A DNA stretch of 64,000 nt. It comes from Ophelia neglecta (taxonomy: Eukaryota). Below, piece by piece: positions 6,001 through 57,100 of this stretch. Where the stretch lies: assembly GCA_965285935.1 (NCBI GenBank), contig OZ260664.1:58342001-58406000 (forward strand). The letters are read 5' to 3'. Under the pieces are notes generated by a model that saw nothing but the letters and a program-made list of their open reading frames with translations, did not search any database and was not told where the DNA came from. Position 1 is the stretch's first letter. Every line of letters starts with the position of its first letter. Made by a program: the position numbers and the translations under genes.

Positions 6001-9000
6001 ATTTGACAAGGCAACTCGCACCCCTAGTTTGACTGTGATGCATGCCAAGAACACAACGGTGCTGGAGATGGAACACAATGTCATAGATTTTCTAACATTG
6101 TGTGCTACACCATGGAACAATGGTAAAGTATCCAGGAAGGTTTAGTTATAAACAGTTAATGAGATACTAACATCAATTTTATATAAAGGCACAAAGTATC
6201 ATTTCTGTAATAATTAAATGTAATAGCTATAAGCTATCCCCCACACATATGCTGGGGATTGTAAAATCTCAAAAAAAATTAAGATTGAATTTAATACAAT
6301 AACCAATCATATGAATATTTATTTTAAGAAATTAAAAAAATGCCATCATGCATGTTTAGAATTATAATGCTAGTAAAAATAGTATATTGTGAAAAAATAA
6401 TGAAATTTAAATTGTCCAGCACCATTTTTATTGCAGATAAGCTCATATATTTGTCAAGTTGTACTAGTGCTATGTGGTGCTCTGTGGAGATATATTTTGA
6501 GGAATGATAAGACTTATATCAGCCAGTATTTATTTTCAGACTTCCAAGACCCCTACGGTATTGTAGTCTTACTGCAAAATGACCTGGTAGTGGTTGATCT
6601 CACTTCCCCAGGGTAGGTAGTGCCAATCCAACCGGTCCTCTCGTCAATACTATTGACTGGTACATGCCATGCTTTGCTTAATTACCCTTTAGCTATTCTT
6701 TCAATTGATTTTACAGCACCATAAGTTTAGGAAATCTGCTTATCTTAACAAGCTAGGGATTTTAACAGTCATTTTGTTTATAAAAATATATCCATAATCC
6801 TATAATTGGGAATGGTAATATCCACGGTGTCTCAGACCTGATATTTCTGTACAGCAATAAACATTTTTATTTTAGCTGCCATTTTCTTTTTGATGTAATC
6901 AATGATTATTGACAGAGTATTTTAGGATTTTTTAGCCTGTATTGGTTACACCATTGGATGTGTCGGATGTCTGATGGTTTGCCTTGCGGCTATATAATTG
7001 CTGTTTTGTTTTCCTCCTAAGTTTTCGTTTTATTTTCTCCTTCATTAAGATTGGTTCTTAGAAGGGCCATACATTGTGAACATGCTTGAAAAAATTTATC
7101 CATGTCATTTTGTGTATGCAGCCTATAGTTTGCTTCCAGCTTAATCAATATTGTATCAAATATCAGGGCTTTTTAGACCTGCTTTTTTAGGACTATTTTT
7201 TAGTAGATGGCAACATGGCGCCGGCTGTAGGTAAAGCTGGGCCAAAGAATTTTCTTTTTTTAAAGAATTTCATAGCATGTTTCATCTTAATTCAGTGTCA
7301 ATTTTGTGGCAGTGAAATGATATGTAGGCAGAGCAGCTGTGTTCCTAATTTAGGAAAGGATATTGATTGCTATGTCCAACATGCAATTACCAAAAAAAAT
7401 TCTTCAATTACCATCAAGTTGGTAAATGCTCTTCTCTGTGAGTGTCATTGGGAGTAAACTCCTATCATTCAAATCTGGTCACTTTAGTCTGCACAATACA
7501 AATACCATATTGCTGTCAATCATAATATCTGTAAGTAAAGGAGTATTCAATAACAATTGATTTAAAAGGAATGCACAAAATACGGACTGGCTATGCCTGT
7601 AAAAGGAAACCAGATTACTTCTAAACTCCACTCAAATGAATCACTGGACCATGTTAAGGCATCACCATTTTGGCTCTATCGTACAGTTGAGACATAAGTT
7701 GTTTTTGAATTGATGATACAAAAATACATCTTAATTCTTTCAGCTATCCCTGTTTTGAGAATCCTTATCCGATGGACATACATGAATCTCCGGTGACGGC
7801 CTGCCTCTATCTGGCAGACTGCCCCCCTGATCTGATTCCTGCATTTTACTCATGTGGTTCCAAACAGAAGAAGACTGGTTTTAGTGAGAATGACTGGCCA
7901 GTGAAGGGTGGGGAGTGGGGGACCACCACCTGTAGCTACCCCGAAATCCTCATCACCGGGCATGCTGATGGATCTCTCAAGTTCTGGGATGCATCTGCAG
8001 GCAAGTCACATTCTATAGATATGTCCAAAGGCTTTGGTCGACTAGGGTTCTTATTGAACTCACTTTTAAATGGGATGTTTTAGAAAAATGGAGTATAAGT
8101 GAGAGTCAATCCGACCTACAAGGGGAAGAAGGGTACATTGCATTTCTGAAAGCCTTGTTTCTATTTTCATGTCTTTATGATCATTTATATATATTGAAGT
8201 AAACATCGGTTGCATAATGTGACAGAGATACAGCCTTCAATTTTTATCAACCAGTAAGAATACTTTTTTCTTTTCAGTCACACTACAAGTGTTATACAAG
8301 CTCAAAACTGCCAAAGTATTTGACCGGAGCAAATGTAAGAACCCCGACCCCGACGATGACCCTTTCGCAATACAGCACCTGTATCTTTGTCCAGATAGTC
8401 GTTTACTCTGTGTGGCCGGCCTTGGACATGTCATCCTCTTCAAGTTCAGCAAAACAGAGGGGAATATAGACTGCCTGGTGAGTGTATCTAAACCTAGTCA
8501 TAGAGTAGACCATTCACCCAGTCATAGAGTAGACCATTCACATAGTCATGGAGTAGACCATTCACCTAGTCATAGAGTAGACCATTCACCTAGTCATAGA
8601 GTAGACCATCCACCTAGTCATAGAGTAGACCATCCACCTAGTCATAGAGTAGACCATTCACCTAGTCATAGAGTAGACCATTCACCTAGTCATAGAGTAG
8701 ACCATTCACCTAGTCATAGAGTAGACCATTCACCAGAATCACTTTCTACTCTAGTCAAAATATATCATATAACACCCTTCTTCATGCCTGAAGTGTTAAT
8801 GACTGACCATGACTTTAAACTTGCTATTATCAATCACTTTTAAATGGGATTTTAGGATGCCAATAAAAAAATTAATATATCCATGAGTTTGGGATAAAAT
8901 ATTGTGCTGTTTGCTTACAATACACACATGTTCTACTTGATTCTCATCTTATTTTGATTTTTCCGTGTGGCAGGCTTTGGAGATTTCCATTGTGTATGAG

Positions 9001-12000
9001 ATTTATGATGACCTGGACTCTCCTGAGCTGGAGTACCCTCCTGTACCACCAAAGCCGAGTATTGGCAATGTGTCTCAACAAAGTGGTAGCGTTGGCTCCT
9101 ATTCCAGCACAGCCTCTGACGGCAAGGTGGGAAACTCTCTTGTTATGATACACATATCTTTGCAATAGTTCACCAAAAAATGCATACTGGTCATGGTTTA
9201 ATATTAAGTCAGATGTAAATTTAAACAAGGCTGAAAAAAGTTAGAAATAAATGTTTGACATAAATAACAACAAATGTGCCAGTCTTATTTTGTTTGAAGC
9301 TGCACTTCTTGAATGTTAAGGCTTATTGTGCTGATTATATATTATTGAATATAGACAGTGTTTGTATACTTTGCAGCCTGAAAGGGAGTCGAGTGTAAAA
9401 GTAAAGAGCGGACCAAGAAAATGGTCATCGGGGTACCAGCCCGACTTGACCTGTGTCCTGATGTGGATTGACGGAGAGCCGCCTCCCCCAATCACCAGCC
9501 TCTCTGTCAACTCTAAATATGGACTGTAAGTTAAATCAACACTGGCCTGCTATCCAGCAATCTTTATACAATATCTCTATCAATAGAACAAGCAGCAATG
9601 GGCAGCTTAGGTCATAATTTAAGGTACAAATCTGTATTTAGTAAAAGATGTTGATGTCAATTATGTGTTTATGATTCTATATATACTTATAAAGCCATTG
9701 GCATATGTTTTTTTCAGTCTGGCCTTTGGCAATGATTGTGGTATAGCAGTGGTTGACTTTGTCCAGAAGTCCTGTCTCCTCAACATGGGCACTCCTGATC
9801 TCTATGGTTTGTAAATGCCTTGACAATAATAATTGAAATAAATTCTCCTATATAATTCAACAGGTCAAAAACAGGTCAGCTAACTTGTTAAAGTGAACTT
9901 GTAAAACCTGATCAATTTGCTTAAGTTTACTAAATATTTTGAGATGATGCCTATCATGTGCAGTGCCTGTTAAATGACTCGTCTTTAGGTTCAATGGACC
10001 CATACTCGAGAGCCCCACGGAGCCCAAAGTCTAAGAGTCAGCTTCAGGCAATAGACCTCTCTCAGCCCTACACGTCAGAGGAGTGCAAGTCACCCACCAC
10101 AGATCAGGTATACTTCTCAGTTTTTCTTATCTTTGGCCTGGTTATTACTACTTACTGTCTGGAATAACAGAACCACTTTCAGGTATATAACACGCCCCTG
10201 CCTGGTATATAACATGCCCCTGCCTGGTATATAACACGCCCCTGCCTGGTATATAACATGCCCCGGCCAGGTATATAACACGCCCCTGCCTGGTATATAA
10301 CACGCCCCTGCCTGGTATATAACATGCCCCTGCCTGGTATATAACATGCCCCTGCCTGGTATATAACATGCCCCTGCCAGGTATATAACACGCCCCTGCC
10401 AGGTATATAACACGCCCCTGCCTGGTATATAACATGCCCCGCCTGGTATATAACACGCCCCTGCCTGGTAAATAACATGCCCCTGCCAGGTATATAACAC
10501 GCCCCTGCCTGGTATATAACATGCCCCTGCCTGGTATATAACACGCCCCTGCCTGGTATATAACATGCCCCTGCCTGGTATATAACACTGGTCTGGTTAC
10601 TTATTCTTGCTAGTCTGGTTACTCAGTCTTGCTGATCTGGTTACTCAAGCTGCTGGTCTGGTTACTCTGACTCGCTGGTCTGGTTACTCTGACTCGCTGG
10701 TCTAGTTACTCAGTCTTCCAGGTCTAGTTACCCAGGTTTGCTGGTCTGGTAACTCAGGCTGGCTGGTCTGGTCACCCAGCCTTGTTGGTCTGGTAACTCA
10801 GGCTTGCTGGTCTCGTTAAACAGGATTAGCACTCTGGTAACACAGGCTTGCCTGTCTCCCCTTGAGTGGCTTTCTCACCTGCATAGGCAAGTCATGAAAA
10901 TATGATTCTAAGAAATCCATCTTTACCTTTATGTATAAGAAAAACCACCTTTACTATGATAAAGTTAGAAACTTGCTTATCTTTTGTGATGAGATAATTT
11001 AACAGTATTTTTCCTTGTATTGAAAAAATACCTTCTCTTTTTCTTGAGTGTTATTTTACTCACATTTTGCAGTGACACAAATATTTAAAAGATATATATT
11101 AAGAGGGTTTTCTTTAAGCTTTTGCAAAACTCCCCATTCTATTGTGTGCCTTGAAAATGCTTTAAGTGACCAATTAACACTTTATTCCATTAATCGCTTG
11201 TTGATTTTACACTCTTTAATCTTTATTCATACATTACTATTGCTACAATAATTTCTGGTTCCAAACCTTTGACTTTTGGGGAGTGACTGGAGCTTTTGGA
11301 GTGTGGTTGGAGCTATTTCGGTGTGATTGCTGTAACACAAGCTGTAGTGTTATTCCTGAATTATGGAAATAATTTCAGGTTTCTTGCTGGGATTTTATTA
11401 TAGGAATTCTCCTATGTACATGAAAATGGCCAGCAGTACTCTGTAAATCACTGGCACATAGGCCAATAACTATCTGGAAAGTCATAACTCATTAACCTAG
11501 CTTCCAATTATACTTTTCATAGCCTGATCTAGGTAAGATTTCTGTGTTTAACTGATCAGTGACAGTCACTGGGTACTAAAGCTATTTTTTAATGAAGACA
11601 ATGCATGTATTTTAAAGCTTTCAGGGAATCCTGCAATTTTGATTGGTGTATGATTGTCAAACCATTAGGACCAAGTGATATGTATTTATATTAATGAAGG
11701 ACTTCACATCCTTTCAACCAACCTTGGCACACATTGCATGGTTGCTTCATTGCCTGGCAGTTTTTATTTGAGGGACATTGGATAAGTGAACTGTTGCATG
11801 CCATGTCATCATTGCTTGTAAATTGCATTTTTTATCTATTGGGAAGTGCTTACTGATGCTTCATTCAGTCAGTGATGTTAACTCCGGTATCAGATAGATA
11901 TCTCTGATTGTGACTTCTTTAATGTGCTGTTAAACTGTTATCCAAATGTCAATTTAAATAGAATATATTGTTTAGAGGAAGTCTGCATACCCCACTCACA

Positions 12001-15000
12001 AGCATGTTTATGTTTTTATGTAGTAAACTACTTCAGTCAGTGATGATATTTGTACCTAACTATCTGTAGATTAAGTCTTGGTTTCTTCTCTTGTGTTACA
12101 GCAGTTTTGTTATTTTAGATAGTATGGTTATTATTTTTCATTTGGTTGTGTTTCAGTGTGATAGCACCATATTGCACACCGTTGCTCATAACCAAGAACC
12201 GGGGGAGAAGAAGAACGGCCCTATTCAAAGTACACCGTCATTGGCCAGTATCAAGGAAACTCCCCAGTTCACTATCAGCGTAGTAGAGCAGGGACACAAG
12301 GATGACAAGAGTGATGGTGAAAGTCAAACAAATTATAGCAGGGACAATCTACAAAGCACACACAAACAAGTTCTGTGCAGTAGCAAAACCATTGATGAGG
12401 CGTTTGCAGCATTAGAGTATCTTGAATCAACCAAAGATGAATCATCAGTTTTTTGTGAGAGTGATGAAGAAAAAAGACTATATCTCACCTCGATTAGTGG
12501 AAAAGACCATAAAAATGCTGGTGGAGATGTTCCAGTCAAACCTCCCAGATCTAAAAAGCAGGCCTCTAAAAACTGTAGTAATTCCTCCGAGTCCTCATTG
12601 CAATCCATTTCGCCTCAGAGAAGCTTCTCTAGTCCAGTAGATGAAAGGCAACCCCCTGAGAAGAGAACGGTGTCGCGTGTGGCCTCGGACGGTCCTCAGT
12701 ATGTGAGCGGGCAGCAGGGCGAAGAGCAAGCTGACAACCAGCACAAGCCCAGACGGAGGAGCAGCATCTTCACCTACTTTACCAAAAGAAAAGAAGAAAA
12801 GATTGATAGTGACTTAACAGATGGCAGCAGTGGAGTAGGAACAAGACAGTTTCGCTCTGAAAATGACCTCAAGACATATGCGCATTCAACTAGCAATCAC
12901 AGTCTTGCCAGCAGTACCCTCTCAAGTAGTGGTACCAGCCAAGAGGCATTGGACGAAATAGACAGCAGTTCCCAAAAAAGCGATAATTCATCCAGGAAAG
13001 AAGGATTTGCACGCAGGATGAGTCGGAAAATGCGACATGCAGTGGTCGGAAAGAAATGGGAGGAGACAGTTGAGGAATGCATAATCAGTAGCAATAAAAA
13101 GCGAGGGCACCAGTTCCAATTAATGGACCTCAGCATGGAAGATGTCCCTGAAAACCCACCCGTCAAAAAGATTTTCTATGCAATCTACTGTCAAATGGGT
13201 ATGTGGCATGTTTGTTATTACTAATGGCTTGTCATTTTATATTNNNNNNNNNNNNNNNNNNNNNNNNNNNNNNNNNNNNNNNNNNNNNNNNNNNNNNNNN
13301 NNNNNNNNNNNNNNNNNNNNNNNNNNNNNNNNNNNNNNNNNNNNNNNNNNNNNNNNNNNNNNNNNNNNNNNNNNNNNNNTATCTGTGGGACTTTTGGATC
13401 ATTCTAATGCTTTGGGCTTTTTCATTTTTCAGGATCAGATTGCAGAACAGTGATTCTTGTTGTATTATTAAACTAAACAACTTTTTTTTTTCATTTTGTC
13501 CACATGTATGCCTTACATTTCTGCTATTTTTCTCCCTCCATGCTACCACAGGCTCAAGGAAAGTGTTGTTCTACTTAGCACTAGAGAAATGAAGATTACT
13601 TTCATTTCCCTTATGTAGTGGTAGGACTATGTGGGTGTGCCTCCCGTAGACTGCCTCTTGTCCTCGGCCAGGACTCAACCACTAGACTTCTAACTTTTCA
13701 TCTTTCCTGTTATAGATAAATGGGGTTTGTCTCAGTCCGACAAACGCCAGCACAAAGAGACCATACCGCCCCGAATTGAAACGGACTAAGTCTCAAGGTA
13801 CTCGCAAAATTCAAAAGGCACAAAGTACATGCTCCATGGAGGACACATCATATTACGGTGCTGAATCTTTTTGGTTTCTCTTGTCAATTTTGACTGGTTA
13901 ACAGTTTGTACATCCAACTTAGCAGACTAAGGGTGATAAGATGATGCTTCCTGTGTGTCCTTTATTTGGTTCATTCCAGTTAATATGTGAATTTGTGTAG
14001 AGCTTTAGTTCATGTTGGATTATTTAAATGTGTCATGTTCAAGCTCGGTGGTGTTGTTAATTCTTTTTATTTTTATCTTTTCTATTTTTACCATTTCTAG
14101 TAGTAGTACTCAATTAAGGTTGTAACCAGATGAATATTGACCAATTTATCTGTGAATTATTAGGTTCCTACCTTGTTTATTTGATTATCTTAGTCATTTT
14201 CCACCATTTGATGATGGTCTAAATCACAGTTTCCTACCCAGACATTTTTTTAAAGCCAAGTAAAAATGGCAAGCCAAAGAAACAGTTGGCATACTGTCTA
14301 TTCATTGGTATACATTAAACTTAGTGCATTTCTCCCTCTTGATCATAGAATAGTGATATTTAAGTATTGATGGTTTATAATTTTGCAATAATTCCATTGA
14401 TAAAAACATGTTTAGTTATACTACTAAGCTTGTCAGCATACATGTTATGTGGCTACCTAGGTTAAGAAACTGAAAACTTTTATTTCTTCCTTGCAGTCCC
14501 ATTAGTGATAGACTTATAGTCCAATCTATTGAAATATAGAGTGTGGTGTATTAAATGGTTGATGTGTTAAGTTGTTTATGCAACCCTTTTCTGCAAATGG
14601 TGTTTTAGCAAATAGACAACCAATAAGAGAACTGTATTTCAGTATTTGGACTCACAGACTATTAAGAGTTCATACACTGAAATATACATTTAAGTGTAGG
14701 CTATTTAATATGTCTCCGTGCATAATTATATCAGGACCTACCCATACTGCTTTTATTTGGGATTGTGCCTGTTTTAACACAAGGTTCACAAGTTGGGTGT
14801 ACACTGACCAGTGTTATTCATTGTTTATATTGTGTTGTGTTACAGTTCTGGTTGTTACTAGACTCATCTTAATCTTTTATTACAGTTAAATTTGATGACT
14901 GTAAGGTCCCATTTATTTCATGTACAAGATCAAACAACAGCCATTAAAGAAAATACCTGCTTCATCTTTCCAAAACATTTCAAATCAGTTAAAATATTCA

Positions 15001-18000: not shown

Positions 18001-21000
18001 GCTGGCTTTGCTGGCAGCATCTCACTTGACTTTAGTGTTTGTCGTTGCCATACAATGCTAGGCTCTTCAGCACTCCTCTGTGTACTGTTCTGAGCGTGAT
18101 GCTCGACCGTGGCTCACTTGTCACACTCACTGGTGTCAGCAATAAAGCTCACACTCGAGCTGGGCACTCTCGCAAAGAATGGAGTCCCAACTCCCCAGGA
18201 TGTGTCTGATCAACTCCCCCCATGAACGCTTCAGTCAAACAAAAAAGCAATAATCTGCCTTCCTAAGGAACAACATGAATTATTTGTATGTTGACTATCA
18301 TAAATCATGATTGTGTAGAACAATAATGTCTTTATAGTGATTTTTTAAAAATTAAAAATTGACATATTAATATTTGTATATAGTTACTGATTTCTTTTGA
18401 TACCTATAGTGTATGTAATATTTGATATTATCTTTATTGATCGGGGATACATATATCCTAATCTAACATGTTATTAAATATCTAAAATAAATGTTTACAT
18501 TTATTTTGTTTTTCCAATATTGTCACTACTAATCTAAACAATGACACTACTTGCATATCAAAACATTTAAAAAAAATGGTGATACAAACATATTTCCATT
18601 TTACTATAATTATAAGCTATTTATTCTGAAAAGCCTGATTCTACCTTACTAGATAAAACAGACGGATCCTTTTCTCGGTCCCGATCTTCATCCATGTCAA
18701 GTTTGGAGAATGTTAATAAGGAAGCAATTCAGTGCCTAGCTTTTGCTGATGCCTACACAAGAAAGTCAGGTAGGAATTGACATTTTGTAGTCACCGGGTC
18801 TTCTGATTAAAATACCATCTATAGTCTACCTGCACCTGAAGGGTAATGCAGATAATTTTCATACTTTTATTATTTTTCTGGGGAGGGGGGGGGGGGGGTG
18901 ATAGGAGGGGCAGTTGTTTGAATCACATAAACCTAGAGAAATGTGTAGTAATTTTCAGATAATGTTATTTTTGTAACTTCTTGTCTGTTCTGGTTGACCC
19001 TATAATGATTGTCTCTGAAATGATTGTTTGTGTATGTACATCAGAGAGTTGACCTCTCCCTGCCTGTGGTTTGATTGGGGGTTTGTGTATGTATTTCAGA
19101 GAGTTTGACCTCTCCCTGCCTGTGGTTTGATTGGGGGGTTTGCGTATGTATTTCAGAGAGTTTGACCTCTCCCTGTCTGTGGTTTGATTGGGGGTTTGTG
19201 TATGTATTTCAGAGAGTTTGACCTCTCCCTGCCTGTGGTTAGATTGGGGGTTTGTGTATGTATTTCAGAGAGTTTGACCTCTCCCTGCCTGTGGTTTGAT
19301 TGCTTGTTTGTGTATGTATTTCAGACAGTTTAACCTCACCCTGCCTGTGGTTTGATTGGGGGGGGGGGGGGGGTTGTGTATGTATTTCAGAGAGTTTTAC
19401 CTCTCCCTGCCTGTGGTTAGATTGGGGGTTTGTGTATGTATTTCAGAGAGTTTGACCTCTCCCTGCCTGTGGTTTGATTGCTTGTTTGTGTATGTATTAC
19501 AGAGAGTTTGACCTCACCCTGCCTGTGGTTTGATTGGGGGGGGGGGTTGTGTATGTATTTCAACCCTGCCTGTGGGTTGATTTCTTGTTTGTGTATGTAT
19601 TTCAGACAGTTTAACCTCACCCTGCCTGTGGTTTGATTGGGGGGGGGGGGTTGTGTATGTATTTCAGACAGTTTTACCTCTCCCTGCCTGTGGTTTGATT
19701 GGGGGTTTGTGTATGTATTTCAGAGAGTTGACCCCTCCCTGCCTGTGGGTTGATTTCTTGTTTGTGTGTATATTTCAGAGAGTTTGACCTCTTCCTGCCT
19801 GTGGTTTGATTTCTTATTTTGTATATTTTTCAGAGAGTTTGACCTCTCCCTGCCTGTGGGTTGGCACAAGTCTTGGCTCGGTCCTGGTGATATCCATGAA
19901 CCTCCCAGAAGGAGAGGCTCGCAAAACACAGCCTGTCATAGTCTCACCAAGTGGTAAGCACCCGCACAACGACAAGTATACTGCAACAATACATTTGAAT
20001 ATATCTACCATTTAACTGGGCTAAATACATGTCTAATTTTTGGGACTCCATTTTGGGAGATCATGCATTATGCATCATTCACTGAATTTTAAGGTGTTTT
20101 CCACATGAAATAGAAGAATGGGGACTTCATTGGGAAATGCGATATTGATTTTATCTGTATCTTTTCCAAACTGTTACAGGAACCATATTCAGATTAAAGG
20201 GGGCTATCATGTGTATGTCATTCCTGGACTGTAATGGCATCCTGATACCCCAGATAGCAGAGGCCTGGAAGGAGCAGCCAGAAACCCCCACTGGCTCCTC
20301 GAGGAAGCAATACAACAGTCAGTCCTCACTCCCTAGTCTTCCCTTCTCACAATAACATGTAGAATTAGGATCATTTAATGTTAAACCTTCTTACTGCAGT
20401 TTATAGACATTCTAACAGCAAGTGAAGCATCTCTTCTGTCACTGTGAATTGATATTTCTTGTACTTATAGCTTTATGCATAAATTGCAATATATTTGTTT
20501 GTAGGACAACAATCTACAACTAATATGAGACCCAAAATGTCACCCACTTCTTCCCAAGAATTACAAAGTGACCGACAGTTTGCTATCATTTGTTCAGAGA
20601 AGCAAGCCAGGGTAAGGCGGCACGGCCAGCGTGCTCTATATTAATTTCCTGAAGCTGTGTTGAGTAGTTGATCAGAGTTTATCTACATAGTTTTATACAT
20701 ACCTGTATATGTAAGATGACATCTTTTTTTTTCTATAAAATCCACTTCTTTTTGTATTTTAATGTGAAATGTCAGTTCCATTTAAGGTATAGATTGGCAT
20801 TTTGCTTTGGCACTATGTTACATTCATATCATCATAAATAACACATGAGGAATCTATTTGTACAGATAAGATCCTTAAAAAGTATGAAATGATGTGTTGT
20901 GGGATAGTGTTTGGTTAGACAAGATGGCTGTAGTTGTGTTTGGTTTATAACATTGTCACAGTACCTCATTTTGTGCTCTTCAGGTCATGACCTTGCCTTC

Positions 21001-23825
21001 TCAGTCCTGTGCCTATAAGGTAAAAATCACAGAGACCTCTATTGTAACTAAGGCAGAAGTAATATCACTTAAAGGTAAGATTACTTCATCTTTCAATGGC
21101 TGTACAAAAAATTACCCCACTACATAGAATTGAATATAGACAATATGGCACTATGTGGAGAATATAGCATTTCTGTGCAAAATGAACAAGGCATTGTAGA
21201 TGCATGAGGCACATTCATTTTCTTCCACTAAATCTCTACAATATTTTTTTCTCAATCTGTTCCATAACTTGTGTTTTACAATAAATAGTTGATAATAGAA
21301 ATTGATGGAAACTTTTACAAAGTGTAAGGGATAAATACATTGATTAGTACAACTCTTGTCATAGTTAGTATTTATGAAAAATTCTTGACCTTCTTCATAG
21401 TTAATTCTGCCTTTCAGAAAGTGTTTGCCTAGCTTGCTATGTTGCCAATGGACACGTCATGACATTCAGTCTGCCTAGTCTGAAGCCGCTTCTAGATGTA
21501 AACCACTGCCCCCTGACCGATATAAGGTACTTGATTAACCATGTAAACCACTGCCCTTGACCAATATAAGGTACCTGATAAATTATATAAACCCCTACCC
21601 CTGGATTGATGTAAAGTACTTCATGAACCATGTAAACCACTGCCCCTGATTGAAATAAGGCACTAGATAAACCTTGTAAATCACTGCGCCACTGACCAAT
21701 ATAAGGGTTTTTATAAACTATATAAACGCCTACCTGTTGACTGATGTAATGTACATATACTTGATAAACTGTTTAAACCTCTACCCCTTGACTGATGTAA
21801 GGTACTTGATAAACTAACAACCAACAATCAGCATGTTCCAAATACCAATAGATAATCTGGGTTAGATTTCCAGTAGTAAGCTTGTGAGAATGGTCATGTA
21901 CCATCATGCAATCAATCAAACATAATATCCTGTATTGAAAACTTGTGAAACCTTTTTTTTCAGGATTGCTAAAACATTTTGCTTCGGCAACAATGGACAT
22001 GCTCTGTACTTCATTTCTCCCACAGAAGTGCAGAAGATCACACTCTCAGCTGAAGTCTGGTAAATATCTATCTTTAAATAAGAATTACACACACAATGTC
22101 TTAATAAAAACATTATTAATGTAAATACTTTGTGCGTTGATTCACCTAATGGTTGAGGGAAATAATGCTGTGTGGTCTTGCCAAAAGTATGTTTTATTTA
22201 CCAGTGACAACCTTAACGAGATGCTGGGCGAGCTGTTCCTTCCAACAGAAGCTCCTGATGCACCTAAACAGAGCTTCTTTAAAAACCTATTTGGAGGAGG
22301 CACTGCTATCCTTGACCGCGAGGAGCTGTGTAAGTGGAAAGGAACACTATCAAATCATACACAAATCTCAAGCCAATCAATATATCTCACCTTCAAACCA
22401 AATGAATCCTTCAGCCCAAGGCACCTGCCAGTAACCTGAAGACCTCTCAGTCCTTGAAAAATACTGACAAATGATTTGCAATCCCTCCAAGTACATCACT
22501 ATACATGTCAGTAGAAGAACATCTAAATGTCAGAGTGACAGTTACTCTCTCCTTTACACTCCCTTCTAGTACATAAACATAGTTGACAGAGCCAGATAGT
22601 TTGAGATCACTTTCCACAATAAACAAGGCCCAAATAATCATGTCTAGGAATTAAGGAAAAGGCTTGTTTTTCAGTGGAAATGACAGCAAAACTGGAAAAA
22701 AAGGGCAATTTAAAGGAACATTCTCAAAAAGAGTTTTTAATTACTCTTGAGAGTGTATTGTTACCAGTCATCAAGTTCTGTATCATATCTTAAAAGTTGA
22801 GTTGAAAAGGTCTTGTCTATTAAAGAGCCAGGAAAAGCAAAAGAATTCAATAGTAACGTTACATACTACTCCACTGGCAGGAGCTTGGTTCTTATCAAAT
22901 AGTTAGTGATGAGATATGGTTACAAAATCTTTACATCCCAAACAAGTTGCAATTTAGGTAGCAGAGCCACTGGTAAATTCTAATGTTAGATGATTTGGTT
23001 TAAATAGTGTACATCACTGATGCAACTGTTAGGAAGAGGTTGAAGCGCACCATATGCCTGAGGCCTTAATGGGAACATGAAATCAAGTCATTGTCTTTGC
23101 CATTGATTTAGTATACAGATATATTAAATATTAAACTATGTAAACAGTTAGGAATTTTCATTAGGCACGTGCACTTGGAATACCAGGCACATAGAAAGTC
23201 ATGGGGATAAATAAGTGTATTGATTACCTGGCACATGCCTCCTTAGGAAATAGGTTATGTACTGTACCCAATGCCACCGTGAAGTAGTATAAGTTATGTA
23301 AGCTACATTAAATTTATTTTTACTACACTACTGTAGTAGTCAGTGGTATGCAGATGTAGTGTATCTCGTGATCAATTTTGTGTTTTAGTTGGAGAGGGCA
23401 GTGGGAAGGCTTCCAAAGGTGTAGCCAAGTACTCTGGAGGAACAGCTGGCATGGCAATGGCACAGGATAGGGCAGGAGCAGCCACCTCAGAGATAGGCAG
23501 GGCCAAAATGGTAAGTACTCTCATGGTAACAATTTTTGCATGGGTGTAAATTTTGAATGAATTTTGTGCACACAAAATCCAAAGGTAGAATTCTTAGTAC
23601 AATGGTAACTAAATTTTGTTTTTATTTTTAAATATACTTTGAATTATTATTAAGTATTTGTTTAATTGTTGTTTTCTTCTCTGCCAGGCGGCCATTGAGA
23701 GAGGGGAGAGATTAGGGCAGCTTGACGACACCACTGAGAAGATGAGAATGGAGGCAGAGGCCTACGCTCAGAATACCCACTTACTCATGCAGAAATACAG
23801 AGACAAGAAGTGGTATCAGTTTTAA
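24..23825 (+). CDS. STXBP5: Tomosyn / syntaxin-binding protein 5 (WD40/Lgl-like propellers + C-terminal R-SNARE), 5'-incomplete multi-exon CDS
   Basis: Frame-consistent exons: 24-147, 4814-4889, 5968-6122, 6540-6612, 7744-8000, 8278-8477, 8974-9126, 9377-9525, 9718-9806, 9989-10107, [12157-13198 or 13716-13797/13857], 18653-18769, 19834-19953, 20180-20317, 20505-20611, 20984-21074, 21418-21526, 21964-22059, 22205-22329, 23389-23510, 23688-23825. Peptides match tomosyn as recalled: SWHHEGKQFMCSHGDGSLTVWN, FENPYPMDIHESPVT, ITGHADGSLKFWDAS, SPCLWVGTSLG, AIICSEKQAR, ERGERLGQLDD (R-SNARE zero-layer Arg) and C-terminal KYRDKKWYQF*. Confidence 0.96.
1543..1720. mobile_element. Tc1/mariner (pogo/Tigger-like) MITE, degenerate
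   Basis: GTGAAACCTGTCT...GGCAGGTTTGACTG|TA inverted ends; related to the copies at 15455 and 34293. Confidence 0.6.
8493..8734. repeat. Minisatellite, 24-bp unit x10
   Basis: CCTAGTCATAGAGTAGACCATTCA tandem copies starting 16 nt after the donor at 8477. Confidence 0.95.
10180..10588. repeat. Minisatellite, 22-bp unit x~18-19
   Basis: GCCTGGTATATAACAYGCCCCT tandem copies; accounts for the three repetitive minus-strand ORFs in the track. Confidence 0.95.
10588..10850. repeat. Degenerate minisatellite, ~22-bp unit
   Basis: CTGGTCTGGTTACTCAGTCTTG-like units directly abutting the previous array. Confidence 0.8.
12157..13198 (+). CDS. STXBP5: Large (1042 nt, ~347 aa) Ser/Lys/Glu-rich alternative exon of the tomosyn hypervariable region
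   Basis: Long ORF 12091-13224 with acceptor TTTCAG| at 12156 and donor G|GTATGT at 13198/13199. It enters in phase 0 (matching exon 9989-10107) and exits in phase 1 (matching exon 18653). Confidence 0.75.
13244..13379. other. Assembly gap (136 N)
   Basis: Run of N between the two alternative tomosyn exons. Confidence 1.
13716..13857 (+). CDS. STXBP5: Short alternative exon of the tomosyn hypervariable region (two possible phase-1 donors, 13797 and 13857)
   Basis: Acceptor TATAG| at 13715. Encodes INGVCLSPTNAST...RKIQKAQSTCSME, resembling vertebrate tomosyn-2 VNGHCTSPTS...FRKAQSAACME as recalled. Phase 0 in, phase 1 out. Confidence 0.8.
15455..15816. mobile_element. Tc1/mariner (pogo/Tigger-like) MITE
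   Basis: TA|CAGTGAAACTTGTC...GACCACC and GGTGGTCTTAACAGGTTTCACTG ends. Confidence 0.65.
16825..17495. repeat. Degenerate minisatellite, 20-bp unit
   Basis: TACTGTCTCCTCCTTAGATA-like units, preceded by a short (TATACAGTCT)n 10-mer run at ~16700-16750. Confidence 0.9.
19021..19861 (+). repeat. Minisatellite, ~56-bp unit x15, whose unit is the tomosyn intron/exon (acceptor) junction
   Basis: Unit GTTTGTGTATGTATTTCAG|AGAGTTTGACCTCTCCCTGCCTGTGGTTTGATTGGGG. The last copy (CAG at 19831-19833) is the real acceptor of exon 19834-19953. Confidence 0.95.
21496..21815 (+). repeat. Minisatellite, ~45-bp unit x7, whose unit is the tomosyn exon/intron (donor) junction
   Basis: Unit ATGTAAACCACTGCCCCCTGACCGATATAAG|GTACTTGATTAACC. 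The first copy is the real exon end and donor (21526/21527). Confidence 0.9.
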
Positions 23826-41819: not shown

Positions 41820-42162
41820 TTGCAGTCCCGGACAGTTAGTGGAGACTCCTGTTGGCGATTTTGTAATGTGATGTGGGGCGTCCCTAAACGGAGGATCTAA
41901 TATAGGAGGATGCACCTGCGCCATGTATAAGCGCGCATTTGGAGGATGCACCTGCGCCATGTATAAGCACATCCGCCAATTGATTTGGAGGATGCATCTG
42001 CAGCCATGTATAAGCGGCGCCGCACTAAACCGCGGATGTTGGTAATATATTAGCAGCCATATATTGGGCGGTCATGGCGGACACTATATATATGTGGGCC
42101 TGGGTGGGATACATGGCGGATGTGCTGGCAGAGTACTGGGCAAGGTATCCGTTTTTAGTTTA

Positions 42163-42468
42163 GGGAGCGTTCATTATTTATGGCCGGGGGGGTGGGGGGG
42201 GGGTGGGGGGGGTGGTCTCAGATCTGAAGTCTCAGATATTAGGGACGGACCATTTGATATTTGGGGGGGGGGGCCTAGAAAATTTTGGAAAAAAATTGTT
42301 TGTTTTCACTTTTGTACAATATATATTTCTAAATAAAATTGCGCACCCTGTGAATAGACTAAAAAAAAACTGTCCCCCCCATGGAAATGGGTTGAAAAAA
42401 AACTGTCCCCCTATGTCCCCCCCCAAATTTACCACCCCCCCCCCCGGCCATAAATAATGAACGCTCCC
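42163..42468. mobile_element. Nested TA-flanked MITE in the left arm of the foldback element
   Basis: TA|GGGAGCGTTCATTATTTATGGCCGGGG ... CCCCGGCCATAAATAATGAACGCTCCC|TA terminal inverted repeats with TA on both sides. Confidence 0.75.
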
Positions 42469-42672
42469 TATACCCAAAAAACGTGTATTTATGGCCAACT
42501 GAAAACAATTTTTTTACATATGGCCGGGGGGGGGGGGGGGGGGGGGGGGTGGTCTCAGATCTGAAGTCTCAGATATTAGGGACGGACCATTTGATATTTG
42601 GGGGGGGGGGCCTAGAAAATTTTGGAAAAAAATTGTTTTCAGTTGGCCATAAATACACGTTTTTTGGGTATA

Positions 42673-42968
42673 GGGAGCGTTCATTATTTATGGCCGGGCG
42701 GGGGGGTGGTAAATTTGGGGGGGGACATGGGGGGGACAGTTTTTTTTCAACCCATTTCCATGGGGGGGACAGTTTTTTTTTAGTCTATTCACAGGGTGCG
42801 CAATTTTATTTAGAAATATATATTGTACAAAAGTGAAAACAAACAATTTTTTTCCAAAATTTTCTAGGCCCCCCCCCCAAATATCAAATGGTCCGTCCCT
42901 AATATCTGAGACTTCAGATCTGAGACCACCCCCCCCCCCCCCCCCGGCCATAAATAATGAACGCTCCC
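42673..42968. mobile_element. Mirror-image copy of the nested MITE in the right arm
   Basis: Reverse complement of 42163-42468 apart from homopolymer lengths and a few substitutions; same TIRs and TA flanks. Confidence 0.75.
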
Positions 42969-43959
42969 TAAACTAAAAACGGATACCTTGCCCAGTACTC
43001 TGCCAGCACATCCGCCATGTATCCCACCCAGGCCCACATATATATAGTGTCCGCCATGACCGCCCAATATATGGCTGCTAATATATTACCAACATCCGCG
43101 GTTTAGTGCGGCGCCGCTTATACATGGCTGCAGATGCATCCTCCAAATCAATTGGCGGATGTGCTTATACATGGCGCAGGTGCATCCTCCAAATGCGCGC
43201 TTATACATGGCGCAGGTGCATCCTCCTATATTAGATCCTCCGTTTAGGGACGCCCTGTGATGTGCAGGTGTCATGGCCGCGATCAGATGTAAACACAGAA
43301 GAACAGGTACGGAGGTAAGCTTGGTTTTTCTGCTTCTAAATGGTCAGCAAGTTATTCAAAAATAACTTAAGCTACAATCCTGAAGCATTTCCCCCTAATA
43401 CCTTGCTGTTTTGGGTTAATATCCAGTGGTTTTGCCGTGGTTGCCCTTGATTTGCCATGGTTGCCCCTTTTAAATACACCCCAATACATGTAGGAATTGC
43501 TTTATCAATAAAAACCAGAAATAATAGTATGTGAACTGTGAAGTCAGATAAAAATTATTTTTGGAGAAAAAATGTACGAAAAAACAAAACAAAAGGGATA
43601 ACGTTTTGGATGCATGGTGTTGTTTTGGTCAAGAGTTGTTATGAAGAACCGTAGAAACATCAATGCCCAACAAGGACCAAATTAAGTGGCAGGAATATAA
43701 TGTCACTAAGGATAAAAAATGACGGACACCAAATAAACAGTGCCTTAAACTGGTGGCACATTAAAACATGGAATAAATGTGCTGGAATCATTAATTTTAA
43801 TATAGATCGTGACTCATTCAATTAGTTATTCAATCAAATTGACATTTTATTGGATTATCGCTCACCAATGGACATTAATCATGTAGATACGCTAGTCCGT
43901 TTTTCAACAAAAAAGTGAATATAACCTTAGAAATTCTGTGTTTGAAGTCCTTGTACTGA

Positions 43960-45470: not shown

Positions 45471-46654
45471 CCCTCAGGGCCAAATTTAATCCTCTAAGGG
45501 CCTATTTAGGATCAGAAATTTGGGCAATCTGCCTACCTTAAGAACTAGAAGAAAAAACATTGGTGTATTTTTTTATTGCCACACATTTCCTTTTACATCC
45601 GCCTTTACTACTCACACATGTTATTTACCCTCGGGGGGGGGGGGCCATATCTCCGGAACTGGAAGTCTACACAATGTTTGGACCAAAAAATTACATTTGT
45701 CTTGGACTACCATCATTTTGAAAAGTTAAATCTAAATAGAAAATCTTCAGAAAAGCAAAAACTACTCTTTTGTGTTTACAAATAGAAGCAGCAAATTTAA
45801 ATTTTGGTTCAATTTTTTTTATGCCTGACTTAATCAGTCACAATCAGACTAGTGTTTCAATAAGTTCAAGCCAAGATGTTACAGCAAACTATATTAATAG
45901 TTCAGAAATATGCTATGCACTAACTAAATTATGACAGATAATGTTAATCTGCAGGTATTGTCATGTGTTCTAATTTAAGTTGACAAATTTGTTTCCTTAC
46001 TGTTTGTTAGTGGTTTATTTTATTTTTTATGACGATGTATATGAAAACATGTGCACAATTCATTTTGCAGATGACTAATTGTATATTTTGTGACTACCAT
46101 CAGAGATAATCACATATTCATGATACTGCCAAATCAATATTGCACATTGAAAATGCACAAACATCTAGCACCAGCTGGTTTACAAGCCCTACCAGTTCCA
46201 TTGATATTAAACAGTAAATAGTTGATAGATCCTAGGGGTATATATAGCTTGTTATATAACCACATTATATTAGAACAATATGAAGTAACAACAGCTGTCC
46301 ATTTTAAAGTCTGCTCGCAATATATTCATGCAGGTGTATGATCAACCTAGTTATTGTCTTCACACATACCCTCACGTTGTCTACTGGGTGATCAGTCTAG
46401 CTTTATAAAAAAGGTTAAGGCTATTTGATGTTTCAATGCTTATTCTGTCAGTTGGAAATAATTCTCTCATGATAATTTATCTTTACAGATGAAGAGAAGG
46501 AAAGGATTTTTCATGAGTGCAATGTGACGTGGGAGAATTAGTTGGTCAATCTTCCCACAAACCTACTGAAACGTCATCACTTGAAGTCCTGGTACTTCTG
46601 ACAACCTGTACTTACCAACAGAAAACCAGAAATTTTGTGTTAATAAGCTGAGTA

Positions 46655-47302
46655 ATGCAGACAACAATGGCTTGGGCATCATATTTTAGGAGATTGGATC
46701 CTCCACTGGGTCCTGTGCCTAGTGATAACAAGGTGGAAGCTGCTCCATTTCTCAAAGCAGCCAAACAAATTGGTCCTTTCTTGGACCTACTGGGCAAAGC
46801 TTTTATCCCAGTTAAAAATGACATTGATGGAAATGTGAAGACATTGCAGAAGAAACTTTACTCCAATCCAGAAAAGTACCGCACCTTTCATGGCATGCTG
46901 ACTGATGAACAATCTGAGAGCACCAAGGCTCGCCCTTCAGCAATCTTATCTCTGTTGTGGTTAAAAAGGGCTCTACAATTCGAGTGTGAGTTCCTTTCTT
47001 TAATCATTGAAGACCATCAGACTGGTGTCCATTCTGAGAATATGGGACATCATTGTAGAGTGGCATATGACAGGACTCTTAAGCCTTACCATAGCTGGTG
47101 GACACAAAAAATATTTAGTTTGGTGTCCAGAGCACTGCCGTGGCGTAGGAGTTTCTTGAAAGCCTTGGCATACAATGTGGAAGGCAAAGATGATGAAGTT
47201 ATCGCCGATATGGCTGACTTCCAAAAGCTACTCAAGTCAAACCTTGATTCCATCCAACAGATGTACACAGATATGGGTTTAGATTTCCCTGACAAAGTAT
47301 AG
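46655..47302 (+). CDS. GLTP: Glycolipid transfer protein (GLTP-fold), single coding exon, 215 aa
   Basis: Motifs typical of GLTP: FLDLLGKAFIPVKNDIDGNVKTL (D-x3-N-x2-K sugar-recognition residues), LLWLKRALQF (Trp stacking plate), AYDRTLKPYHSW (His). Acceptor CTTTACAG at 46488 implies a 5'-UTR intron. The true start could be the ATG at 46667. Confidence 0.92.
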   Translation: MQTTMAWASYFRRLDPPLGPVPSDNKVEAAPFLKAAKQIGPFLDLLGKAFIPVKNDIDGNVKTLQKKLYSNPEKYRTFHGMLTDEQSESTKARPSAILSLLWLKRALQFECEFLSLIIEDHQTGVHSENMGHHCRVAYDRTLKPYHSWWTQKIFSLVSRALPWRRSFLKALAYNVEGKDDEVIADMADFQKLLKSNLDSIQQMYTDMGLDFPDKV

Positions 47303-52417: not shown

Positions 52418-54117
52418 ATAGCCACCAGTGGGAGAGACCAGTGGGAGACACCAGCATAGCCCATGGTAGACAGCTCACCTCTCCACATAGTGGAGACCCC
52501 AGCGTAGCCTCATGGTAGCTTTAGCTTACTTCCTTGTGTTCATCAATAATATTTGAGTAGGCACTTATTAAGGATTTTTGACATTTAATTAGCTGGCTGG
52601 AAAATAAAGAGCTGCGTTTCCTGTGGCATGCGTATACATTGTGTAAAAACATGCCAATGATTGACTTATTAATCACACTACCATGTGATGCTATATTTTG
52701 GAGTCCACTTAGCACCACCCATTATGCTTCTTTTTTGAGATGCATGATATATACAGTGGTCCCAAGACATCATGCTCATCTTTGACCCTCATGGTATACC
52801 TCCAGTTGGACTGTGATGAGATTCAAGCCGTGTAGGGTAATCTGTTTCATTCCTTTAAAACCACCAATACAAACAGTGAAATAAATGTTATTTTGCATAT
52901 TATTTTTTTGTAAAATGAAAGAAAATATTAAAAAATATGTTTAAAATGTGGCAAAAGTTAGCCTCTGGTAGCATTTGCATCATTTGGCAGCACTTAATAT
53001 GCCTGAAATATTGAGCATGCCAAAATGTCTATTCACATTTATTTTGTGTTTTATGATATACATGTCCTGTCTTCCTTGAAATAGATACTAGTATACTTAA
53101 TTTCTTAGGACCATTTTATAAACTTGTTGTGCATGTCGTGACTCAGAAATTACTATGTACACAAACTGGCACTGTCAATATATCATGTAGTAGCCATTCC
53201 TTTGGCTGTCTACTTTGTCTGAAGTCAATATTCTGACAGAGCCAAGGTCCCACGAAGAACATTTAAATGTGTGCACAGGGCTGTGTAATTTGTTTGTCCT
53301 AAAGAGTTTTTAAGTGTCATGGGCAAAACCCCCATGCCATTGTGGCAGAATGTGCCCTAAGACCGGTGATGCAATTGACATGAAAATTTTAGGAAGTACT
53401 GATGAAATGTGAGCAAACTGCATACCAATGTGAGTTTTTTTTTAATTTGAAATTAAATTAGTTTTATGTTCGGCGCAAAAATGAATATTTTTCCAACTAA
53501 AACATCCTTATGTGCAAGGTGAGAAAATTGAAGGAAGAGGGGAATCAATGATTATCTATATGAATCCAATGTCTTGTTACCGGTTTTTTCAACATTTTGG
53601 CCGGGATGCAGCGAAAGCACTGGGATCCCCCAGTACTTTACATGCACTCATAATAATGCGTCCATGCATACTATTGCTCATATATTTTGCATGGGTTTCT
53701 ATTTTGTGTGGCATAAGGCTGAGGCTGAAAAGGCATGTTAAGAACTACAATTAAAACACTGTGTAATTTGAATTCTTATTGGTTTTTTAATTAAAATCAC
53801 TGAGGTAAGAGAAGCAGTGCTGTTTTATAAGTATTATAATATTATGTTTGGAACTTTGACAGAATGTTAACTGGCTAAATATCTTATGCTTTAAGTTTTC
53901 CTTTTTTTTTCAGTAGAGTAGTCCAGTCACTATGTACTCCCTTTCTCCTGCCTGGAGTATATCATTGGAATGACCGGCACACCAAATCTTGTTTGATAAA
54001 CATTTTGTGTTCTAAACCAAGAAGCGCATGTATTTATGGGCTGTTTGTCCATTCATGCGAATAAGTTGATAAACAAGGAAGAAGACGAAAGGAAAGTAAA
54101 ATAAGGAACTGCTAATC

Positions 54118-57100
54118 ATGGCGGGAAATGATGTCATAAAACTTTCATACATGCAAAAACGTGCTCAGATGAGGAGCAGATTCACAACAGAAAATTATAA
54201 ACACAGATGGTTTGTGCTGACTAAAGAAAAGTTAACGTACCATGATGGCGGATGTGACGTAAGTTGAATGTTTTCTGTGAGAAGAGGTTTTCCTTCTTCT
54301 TCGATGTCCTGTCATTATGAATTGCATAGTAGTAGAACTATTTAATGTTGTTGAAATTGGGGCATCTAATAAATCAGTCCGTGAATATGAAACTTATCAA
54401 TAACAGTATGTGAACCCTACATAAATTAATAAGATAAAACAATTAACATAATTTGTATGATGTATGTATGCAGTTAAGATTCATGATTATAACTTTTTCC
54501 TCCAGGACCTGAAACCTGGGAAAGCAAAGGGCAATCCTATCCTTATGTCATCAATTAAGGCCGTAGAAAAAGTAGAGGCAGAAGCTGTTGGCAATAAACC
54601 AAATGCATTTCAGGTAACTGAATGGTTTGTTTAATTTGAAAATAGCTTCATTAAGGATTGCCAGAAGTTAACTTGGCTAACTATTACAGTGTTAGGTTAG
54701 CTTTTTTTTACTCTTTCAAGCTAGCCAGACCAAGTTTGTGGTAAAGCATGTGGTTTCAAGATGGTGGAGCTACTAATTCATCAACATAATTAATGGCTTA
54801 AGGTGGGGTGGAGTGAGTGTGCCTCAAAACACAACACTCGAGTGCACTTCAACAGAATTTCTGAAGTATATCTCTGAAGTTCAAATGTCCTTAAGGAGGG
54901 ACCTCTGAAAACTCTTGCTAAAGTCCCCTCCCTATTTCCATTTTTGGACTTTTAAATATCTGATTTGAGTTCTAAAAATTTGCTCACCTAATTCCTTGTT
55001 TTCTGACTAAACTGTTATGTGCCTCTGTGGTAGGCCTATGCTTTTGCCTGCTGGAAGAATATGGTTCCATCTCTAAAACACTCTAAACATTTTCATATAG
55101 ATATGGTGCCTAAAGCATTTGGGCAAAAACATCAATTCCTCCCTTGAGACTATATTACATCAACCATGTGTCATGATAGTGTGATGGCACAGGAAAAAGA
55201 GTCCCCAGATTTAAAAGGGTTTACAAACAATTACATTTTCAAATTAGCTTTATCATTGAAGGAATTTTATTCGGTCCCCAATCTTTTATTGACTAAGAGC
55301 TACTAAGCCTAGAAGAAAATACACATAAGCTGATACTGTTTTTTGTTCCAACCACTTTCAATGGTGTACAAAGACCAATGTTAACTTGCTGAATATATCA
55401 AATACCTGTAGGCGGCTAATCACGAGCTACCAAACGAGGAGCACCCAGGGAGCTCAATGGTCATGAGTCAATGGGGTCAGTAGGTATGTGTATATTATTA
55501 TAAGGACAGCTGTATGTCTGGGGTTATTGAGGATAGCAGGCATGGAAAAGAGTCTTAAGAAATGCCAAAATGGCACAAAATGGCCCAAGCCTATGAGACC
55601 CAATTGAACCAACTCGGTTGGTCTATTATATTATAGAGCAAAACATTGTCAATAGTGCTATTCTCCCATTTTTTACACCATTTTTGTCCTTGACTGGCAT
55701 CACAGGACTGTTGAAATGATTATTGAACATAATAGAAAGTCGGGCACTTGTCCTTATCAAGCGCATGAATGAAAAATTCAACTGTCGATTAAATGGAAAT
55801 GTTTGTTGATGGTCAGCAGTATCAGATGGTTTCTTTTCCAAGTTGAAGCTATGAATTTGCTTTGCTTTTGCAAAATAAAAGATACTTTGGATAAAAATAT
55901 AACTATTGATACTTTAATACTGTGACGTCTGGCTGCTTATCCTTGGAATTTTGAAGTGTTCGTCGTACCTTCTTCTCGCCGGAGAGTGCATGGCTTCTGC
56001 TGATCTTTCTCTGGGCCTATTCCTATCCTCTCCTTGCCTTGGTGCCCTTGGTGGTGATTTGTTGCTTGTTGGTTGAGTTTCTCTTGACGTTACCCTGTCT
56101 TCCTCTGGTGTCTTCAATCTTTTATTAAGGGAGGATGATGGTGCCGCTATACCCTGCCCTTTCTCCACAGAACCCGATGACAGAGACGACCCTGATGAGG
56201 ACGATGAGGAAGATGAGGATGACGACGATCGTGCCCTTTTCTGTGATGGGGGTTGGTGTGGGGTTTGATCCTGCACCACAGGCATGTTGAGGATATGTCT
56301 TACCGTACTGGTAAGCATACCTCCCCTCAACTCATCCTCTATCAAGCCGGCGAACCTGTTGTTAACGGCTCTAAATGCCTCTCCTTGCACCTTTAACTGC
56401 TCAAGTAGCATGCCCTGCTGGGTGTTCAGGCACTGCACAACTCCCTTCAGCTGGTCTATACTGGCCGCAAAGGTGCTGGCCATAGTTGTGAGGGCCTCCC
56501 TGTTCGCCTGAACCTCCCTTCTCAACTCCTCCACTGTGGGTGCCAGTGGTGCAAGGCTTCCCGCCATGGTTTTGAGCACGGAGGTGGCTTCGGCATGGTA
56601 CTGGTTGCCTGACATTCCAGTGTGGTAGGCATCCAGGCTCCTCCGCATCTCGGCAAGTTCCCCACCGACGATTCCAAGCTTCGTGGAAAGCATGTGGGCT
56701 GACTGGTCGGCAACAGGCCTGAGCCTATTGCCGCCACAATGGCGCTGGTCACGCTTGTGATCGACACTCGCACGCTGTCCCTCACGACAGACTTGATGAG
56801 CTCTGTTGCCCCAAGGTTTAGTGCTCCCCCAGATGGGCTGCCTTCCTGTGGTGCAATGTCTGCGAGGCCATCCTTGCCGATCTCCTGGAGGTGGCGGGCG
56901 CAATTCAACAAGCCCTCAGGGGGGGGGGGGTATTGATGAGCTTATGAGATCTGCAATGTCTGGCTCCGCGGCCATCTCTATGGGCAACTGAGCCTCGCTG
57001 ACGGGGGTCTGGGCCATCCTGGCCCCTGTGGCCGGGGCGGGGTCTCCTATACAACCCGACACACTCATGGATGTGTCAGTGACCCCCATTATGGTTGAGC

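Follow-up and report, generated by a model that had tools for sequence, protein, structure and literature searches.

Minisatellites that overlap a splice junction form a known class, the mirages, in which an intron/exon boundary has been duplicated in tandem, and the cases on record come mostly from amphioxus, with a few from human genes. The first was described at amphioxus Adh3 in 2002, as cited in PMC3087553 and PMC3902484, and further amphioxus examples are found in TnC, in the globins BflGb6 (acceptor side) and BflGb9 (donor side) and in PGBD5 (PMC3087553, PMC3902484). At the Adh3, TnC and globin loci splicing is normal by RT-PCR despite the duplicated AG and GT dinucleotides (PMC3087553, PMC3902484), and in amphioxus mirages the interior units evolve in concert while the boundary units are divergent (PMC3087553). 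In humans, the 37-bp VNTR in intron 7 of the F7 gene has a first unit that spans the donor of exon 7, and its pseudo-donors are silent although functional (Borensztajn et al. 2006, PMC1557585). Tandem duplication also underlies the Rogers model, discussed in PMC3087553, in which introns are gained or grow by the duplication of segments with proto-splice sites, and potato RdRp appears in PMC4974935 as a case of intron gain or growth by such a route.

In the window analysed here, a stretch of 64,000 nt from Ophelia neglecta, positions 19021-19859 (+ strand) are occupied by a 56-bp minisatellite of 15 units that lies in an intron of tomosyn (TRF: 19026-19863, period 56, 14.9 copies, 81% matches, score 998). 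Judged by its sequence, the array belongs to the mirages. These comprise at least three head-to-tail copies of a unit of tens of base pairs, as is the case here; the unit spans a genuine boundary, with the end of the intron, the splice signal and the start of the exon; the authentic copy stands at the edge of the array that is contiguous with the exon, all others being intronic; and the interior of the array, boundary units excluded, shows concerted evolution. We consider it probable (about 0.8), in part by analogy with the systems above, that this mirage is a by-product of a genome prone to repeats, either neutral or mildly harmful in effect, and that it is spliced out and does not act as a regulator.

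Host gene and repeated junction

The host gene, on the + strand, is assigned by homology to tomosyn (STXBP5), in agreement with the first-pass annotation. It combines Lgl-like WD40 propellers with a C-terminal R-SNARE motif, the last exon matching the Synaptobrevin R-SNARE entry of Pfam (26.7 bits, cut-off 26.4); a profile-free search with a single exon retrieves proteins named syntaxin-binding protein 5, and orthologs of this name, of which P0002 from Nucella is the nearest in full length, align exon by exon over positions 21-23822 of the window (tblastn). Exons were searched singly, and joined-exon coordinates were used only for frame and stop checks. Exon 19834-19953 alone has no match in Pfam and a weak match to Lgl2 among PDB sequences (E 0.0027, residues 4-35); its repeated residues SPCLW align with CPSLW of human Lgl2.

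At the junction, the G at 18769 is completed by AG to a Glu codon, and the product reads ...YTRKS-E-SLTSPCLWVGTSLGSV... (start SLTSPCLWVGT). Orthologs follow the pattern ...YTRK[ST]D-xxTxPCLWVGTSLGSV at the same length and with no insertion, and the spacing from YTRK to CLWVGT is equal in molluscs, annelids, arthropods and a tunicate, from which it follows that an insertion from a decoy has no place in the protein. The residues encoded by the repeat are ancestral: since they are kept in the orthologs and in Lgl2, the units derive from the exon and not the reverse. The candidate that an intronic repeat already present gave rise to the start of the exon was rejected on the same conservation.

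Cutting the array at the invariant CTGTGG yields the 15 units, in each of which roughly 30 nt from the end of the intron lead up to a CAG, followed by AGAGTTTGACCTCTCCCTGCCTGTGG, the 26 nt that also start exon 19834-19953. Together with the TRF result and the orthologs, this unit split bears out the original description of a 15-unit array built from the intron-exon junction with the real acceptor last. The CAG is kept in 14 of the 15 units, that is, in 13 of the 14 intronic copies that lie upstream (units 1-14) and in the last (unit 15), which holds the authentic acceptor; the deleted copy that had been reported is unit 10 (19529-19575, 47 nt), which has lost its AG together with the rest of some 14 nt of internal sequence. 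According to a distance matrix, the interior units are near-uniform (u2=u4, u5=u8, u7~u12, u6~u11) and the edge units the most divergent, u1 and u15 showing 9-15 differences from the other units, and TRF detects an additional higher-order period of 178, corresponding to a three-unit repeat. Where unit 15 departs from the consensus, it does so in the intronic half only (0/26 exonic differences). A 225-nt query of four units, searched against the 762-Mb assembly, matched solely the array in the tomosyn intron.

The decoys carry a branch-point-like TTGAT, the CAG and a donor-like TGT/GTATGT, from whose GTATGT only 13 nt remain to the next CAG. GTATGT occurs 13 times within the array and never after the real AG. 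The first-pass annotation placed it about 43 nt after the AG of most decoys and found it lacking in the real copy; the latter is correct, and the former describes 11 of the 13 intact decoys, where the first GTATGT lies 42-53 nt past the AG, but not the last two, which have GTGTGT or GTATAT instead. Every CAG of the array continues as AGAG or ACAG, and the authentic acceptor, CAGAGAG, offers further AGs 2 and 4 nt past the real one. G runs of 5 to 16 nt are present in nine of the 14 decoys. An older, pyrimidine-rich form is kept in the units nearest to the exon (u14, u11), and G runs abound in the blocks of recent duplication.

Table 1. Features of the two splice-junction arrays and their flanking exons (window coordinates; a slash marks the splice site).
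Feature	Position	Strand	Remarks
Upstream tomosyn exon	18616..18769	+	End secure, donor G/GTAGGA, phase 1; start uncertain, ~18616-18640; from tblastn with orthologs P0002 and P0206 plus splice refinement
Intron, 1064 nt	18770..19833	+	Array = 813 nt (76%)
Intact decoy acceptors (n=13)	19042..19778	+	CAG starts 19042, 19097, 19154, 19210, 19266, 19322, 19388, 19444, 19500, 19603, 19665, 19721, 19776
Longest G run (G16)	19358..19373	+	
Other G runs of the array	starts 19077, 19133, 19190, 19246, 19424, 19536 (G11), 19639 (G12), 19701	+	
Authentic acceptor CAG, last copy	19831..19833	+	Pyrimidine content 0.80, top of array
Tomosyn exon (E)SLTSPCLWVGTSLGSV...VSPSG	19834..19953	+	Then donor GTAAGC; first 26 nt = exonic half of repeat unit; from orthologs and Lgl2 alignment
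Tomosyn exon, four exons downstream of exon 19834-19953	21418..21526	+	Ends AAG/GTACTT
Donor-side mirage, 45 bp x 7	21496..21816	+	First unit = last 31 exon nt + donor AAG/GTACTT

The closest tomosyn found is that of the annelid Capitella teleta (~71% amino-acid identity over the exons), whose orthologous intron has the same position and phase, measures 54 nt and is without the repeat. In the clam Tegillarca, the intron position is kept and the junction is single-copy. A junction array is thus absent from both orthologous loci examined, neither of which belongs to a close relative, and for this reason the tomosyn array appears to be lineage-specific and young. It is also what made this intron long, given that it makes up 76% of the 1064 nt, as compared with the 54 nt in Capitella, and the earlier view, that the intron grew as its junction was duplicated, is a fair one.

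Tegillarca tomosyn contains repeats of its own. An unrelated 41-bp array is located about 140 nt upstream of the junction, and in Tegillarca granosa CM056596.1 (28269-38091 of the extracted piece) the tomosyn exons past the variable region are on the strand opposite to the N-terminal exons, with a 29-bp array (>200 copies) and a 41-bp array (51 copies) between these exon groups. Tomosyn falls into separate gene models there, which suggests a misorientation or a real inversion.

Decoy acceptors and the choice of the last copy

As had been noted at first pass, splicing to the nearest decoy inserts 55 nt with a change of frame, and the second nearest runs into a stop; the latter adds 110 nt, and the stop comes after two codons. 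Our reading-frame check extends this to all 13 decoys, each of which results in a frameshift or in a stop within 60 codons, on which ground in-frame alternative isoforms made through the decoys were rejected.

The tract of the real copy, TTCTTATTTTGTATATTTTTCAG, has a pyrimidine content of 0.80, and 11 real acceptors of tomosyn range from 0.55 to 0.80. At 0.45-0.50, the G-run decoys lie under the minimum of these 11 acceptors. That most decoys have a G run is accurate for nine of 14 (up to G16 at 19358), and four have none (AG ends 19324, 19502, 19605 and 19778); the latter, with pyrimidine contents of 0.60-0.70, fall within the range of the real acceptors, which means that tract weakness cannot explain the silence of all decoys. 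AGGT does not occur in 19000-19860, and the juxtaposition that defines a recursive site (YAG/GTRAGT) is consequently absent from the array, which tells against the idea that the units serve as classical recursive sites. RNA folding of four array segments, as compared with shuffles, revealed no extra structure (z -0.46 to +0.73), and the masking of decoys by RNA structure, with G runs paired to the C-rich, exon-derived part of the unit, was rejected because the folds are no different from those of the shuffles.

Over the whole window, with a GC content of 37%, poly-G/C runs of at least 10 nt outnumber poly-A/T runs by 18 to 6. Individual examples are G24 at 42526 and C17 at 25749 and 42929, and a G14 at 18885 lies just upstream of the array.

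A pseudo-exon of ~43 nt with a TGT/GTATGT donor would be poorly defined in terms of exon definition. We infer that the last copy is chosen over the others because a full exon, of 120 nt and with a good donor (GTG/GTAAGC), follows this copy and no other, and because its pyrimidine tract is the strongest of the array; most decoys have a G-interrupted tract and, as their sole donor-like site, one that would yield such a pseudo-exon. Any leak into a decoy would produce a premature stop, and the transcript would probably be degraded by NMD. From the amphioxus and F7 cases we assume, by analogy, that the decoys are silent and that the gene tolerates the array without making use of it.

A second mirage and other repeats

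Tomosyn carries a second junction array, which lies on the donor side of an exon further downstream (Table 1). At the end of this exon, orthologs read ...LPSLKPLLDV..L.TD.R/IAKTF. Its decoy donors follow positions 21570, 21615 and 21801, the last of them equal to the real donor over 9 nt, and all would add out-of-frame sequence with stops. The gene as a whole measures ~74 kb and contains 12 minisatellites. The 60 kb upstream of the window (58282001-58342000) hold tomosyn exons one to six, which extend across ~50 kb, and six more large intronic minisatellites (e.g., 37 bp x 65, 39 bp x 36 and 51 bp x 26), none of which is on a splice junction. The two junction-spanning arrays observed in tomosyn compare with 0.32 expected (Poisson P ~0.04) under a rough null of random seeding that is biased by the gene having been picked for the feature. 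An array of similar kind is found 23.5 Mb further along the chromosome (81931879-81932541), where 17 tandem 39-bp units, each with a GTAAGT, come directly after an open frame that follows an acceptor-like CAG.

Other repeats of the window lie close to tomosyn exons. Two adjacent 22-bp arrays (10182-10588, 18.5 copies, and 10588-10851, 12 copies) begin 75 nt past the donor CAG/GTATAC at 10107; the first unit repeats CWG/GTATATAAC and shares CAGGTATA with this donor, and the arrays may represent the decayed remains of an old donor mirage or a chance resemblance. A 24-bp x 10 array (8492-8734, 96% matches) lies 14 nt past the donor of the exon that ends at 8477 and includes no exon sequence. In the variable region of tomosyn, an open frame of 384 codons (12070-13221) runs into a stretch of 136 N (13244-13379).

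Beyond the gene, positions 42000-43000 contain G-rich and C-rich open frames mirrored on the two halves, with repeated GGGGGG...FGKKLF motifs, a pattern that suggests a repeat element, inverted or tandem, in the interval from tomosyn to its neighbour. By eye, a 216-codon open frame at 46652-47299 resembles glycolipid transfer proteins and 54100-54264 a PH-domain exon; both probably represent neighbouring genes.

Origin of the array and its place among known systems

Under the mirage reading, slippage or unequal exchange would have produced a tandem duplicate of a 56-bp segment over the 3' splice junction. More rounds of unequal exchange, the later ones in blocks of three units, would then have extended the array into the intron. 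The copy contiguous with the rest of the exon would have stayed the acceptor, leaving the 14 others in the intron to be removed with it. It is extremely unlikely that the array, or its length, was instead expanded by the assembler. Contigs assembled from k-mers of three short-read DNA runs of one sample, perhaps the assembly's own, reproduce both edges of the array and most of its distinctive joins (u1/u2, u5-u7, u8-u10, u10/u11, u11/u12, u13/u14 and u14/u15) with 0 differences, and one of 121 nt leads from unit 13 through unit 15, crossing both final decoys to reach the real copy. The edges and most joins are upheld in this way, whereas the number of near-identical units 2-5 is beyond the reach of the contigs, which give no copy number, and rests on the assembly (bins 19149-19270 are without unique contigs). 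The contigs of this one sample also differ in G-run indels and include a variant first unit.

The composition of the array bears on two further readings. The amplified interior units are mainly of the G-run variant, which speaks against pure neutrality, and selection against competent decoys could be the reason. An array neutral in origin, in which such selection shaped which variants were amplified, would explain both the dominance of G runs in the interior and the presence of the best tract in the real copy, and it is compatible with the mirage reading, to which it adds a filter. It is supported by the nine G-run decoys, whose pyrimidine content is below that of every real acceptor measured, by the older pyrimidine-rich form of u14 and u11 next to recent blocks rich in G runs, and by a real unit that differs from the consensus in its intronic half alone. 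We nevertheless regard it as rather unlikely: four decoys persist without a G run, two of which (u6, u9) are inside recently duplicated blocks, and a single array provides no statistics. Moreover, poly-G/C tracts are general in the window, at three times the number of poly-A/T, and G-run lengths vary between contigs as slippage predicts, so that slippage suffices without selection; the proposal that the G runs are selected silencers loses its footing on the same points. Far less probable still, and to be considered very unlikely, is a regulatory array, in which controlled use of decoys and GTATGT sites would feed transcripts into NMD and copy number would tune tomosyn dosage. The branch-point-like, acceptor and donor-like motifs of the decoys are plausible, and all decoy products would carry premature stops. 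However, the array is not conserved in Capitella or Tegillarca, which weighs against the dosage tuning suggested at first pass; recursion has no AG/GT to act on; and the 13 nt between GTATGT and the next CAG would make unit-to-unit splicing sterically impossible, which, with the poor definition expected of ~43-nt pseudo-exons, also tells against poison mini-exons. The same kind of array elsewhere in the genome (39 bp x 17, 23.5 Mb away) points to a mutational process, the amphioxus mirages that have been studied splice normally, and the RNA folds are no better than shuffles.

As a single locus, the array matters little, since it adds one further case to a class already described. Such arrays appear to be frequent in this lophotrochozoan-like genome, with two in tomosyn, and those on the acceptor side are the harder case for splice-site choice, because out of many near-identical sites it is the last that has to be chosen. 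A species rich in acceptor-side arrays and provided with RNA data could serve as a natural test of exon definition versus scanning. More tentatively, and with doubt outweighing confidence, splice-junction minisatellites may be a recurrent, genome-wide class in this non-chordate whose internal make-up is filtered by splicing, such that only variants with a disabled acceptor (here by G runs) are amplifiable; if so, they would constitute natural saturation experiments on splice-site silencing.

Among the known systems, the Rogers model shares with this locus the duplication of splice signals, the use of the outermost pair and the intronic fate of the duplicated material, but here no new intron has arisen, and an existing, conserved one has been lengthened from tens of nucleotides to ~1 kb. 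Recursive sites and NAGNAG acceptors likewise offer several AGs to the spliceosome; the tomosyn array, however, is without the AG/GT juxtaposition of the former, and its AG spacing of 2 nt, not 3, sets it apart from an in-frame NAGNAG. The amphioxus mirages resemble it in their junction-spanning unit, intron-side array, authentic edge copy and many retained AG or GT dinucleotides, as well as in their homogenised interior and divergent edges, and in both hosts 3' and 5' boundaries are affected. BflGb6 is of the same acceptor-side type, albeit with 3-6 copies as opposed to 15. The tomosyn array differs from these in the prominence of its G-run variants and in a host that is not a cephalochordate, and amphioxus splicing is known from RT-PCR, whereas the present reading is drawn from sequence. 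The F7 VNTR, also a minisatellite on a splice junction with identical pseudo-sites, which in F7 are silent, is the direct counterpart of the donor-side mirage at 21496-21816. In F7, the most upstream donor wins by 5'-to-3' scanning, while in the acceptor array of tomosyn it is the last copy that must win; simple scanning offers no explanation for this choice, and exon definition combined with tract strength would be the likely reasons.
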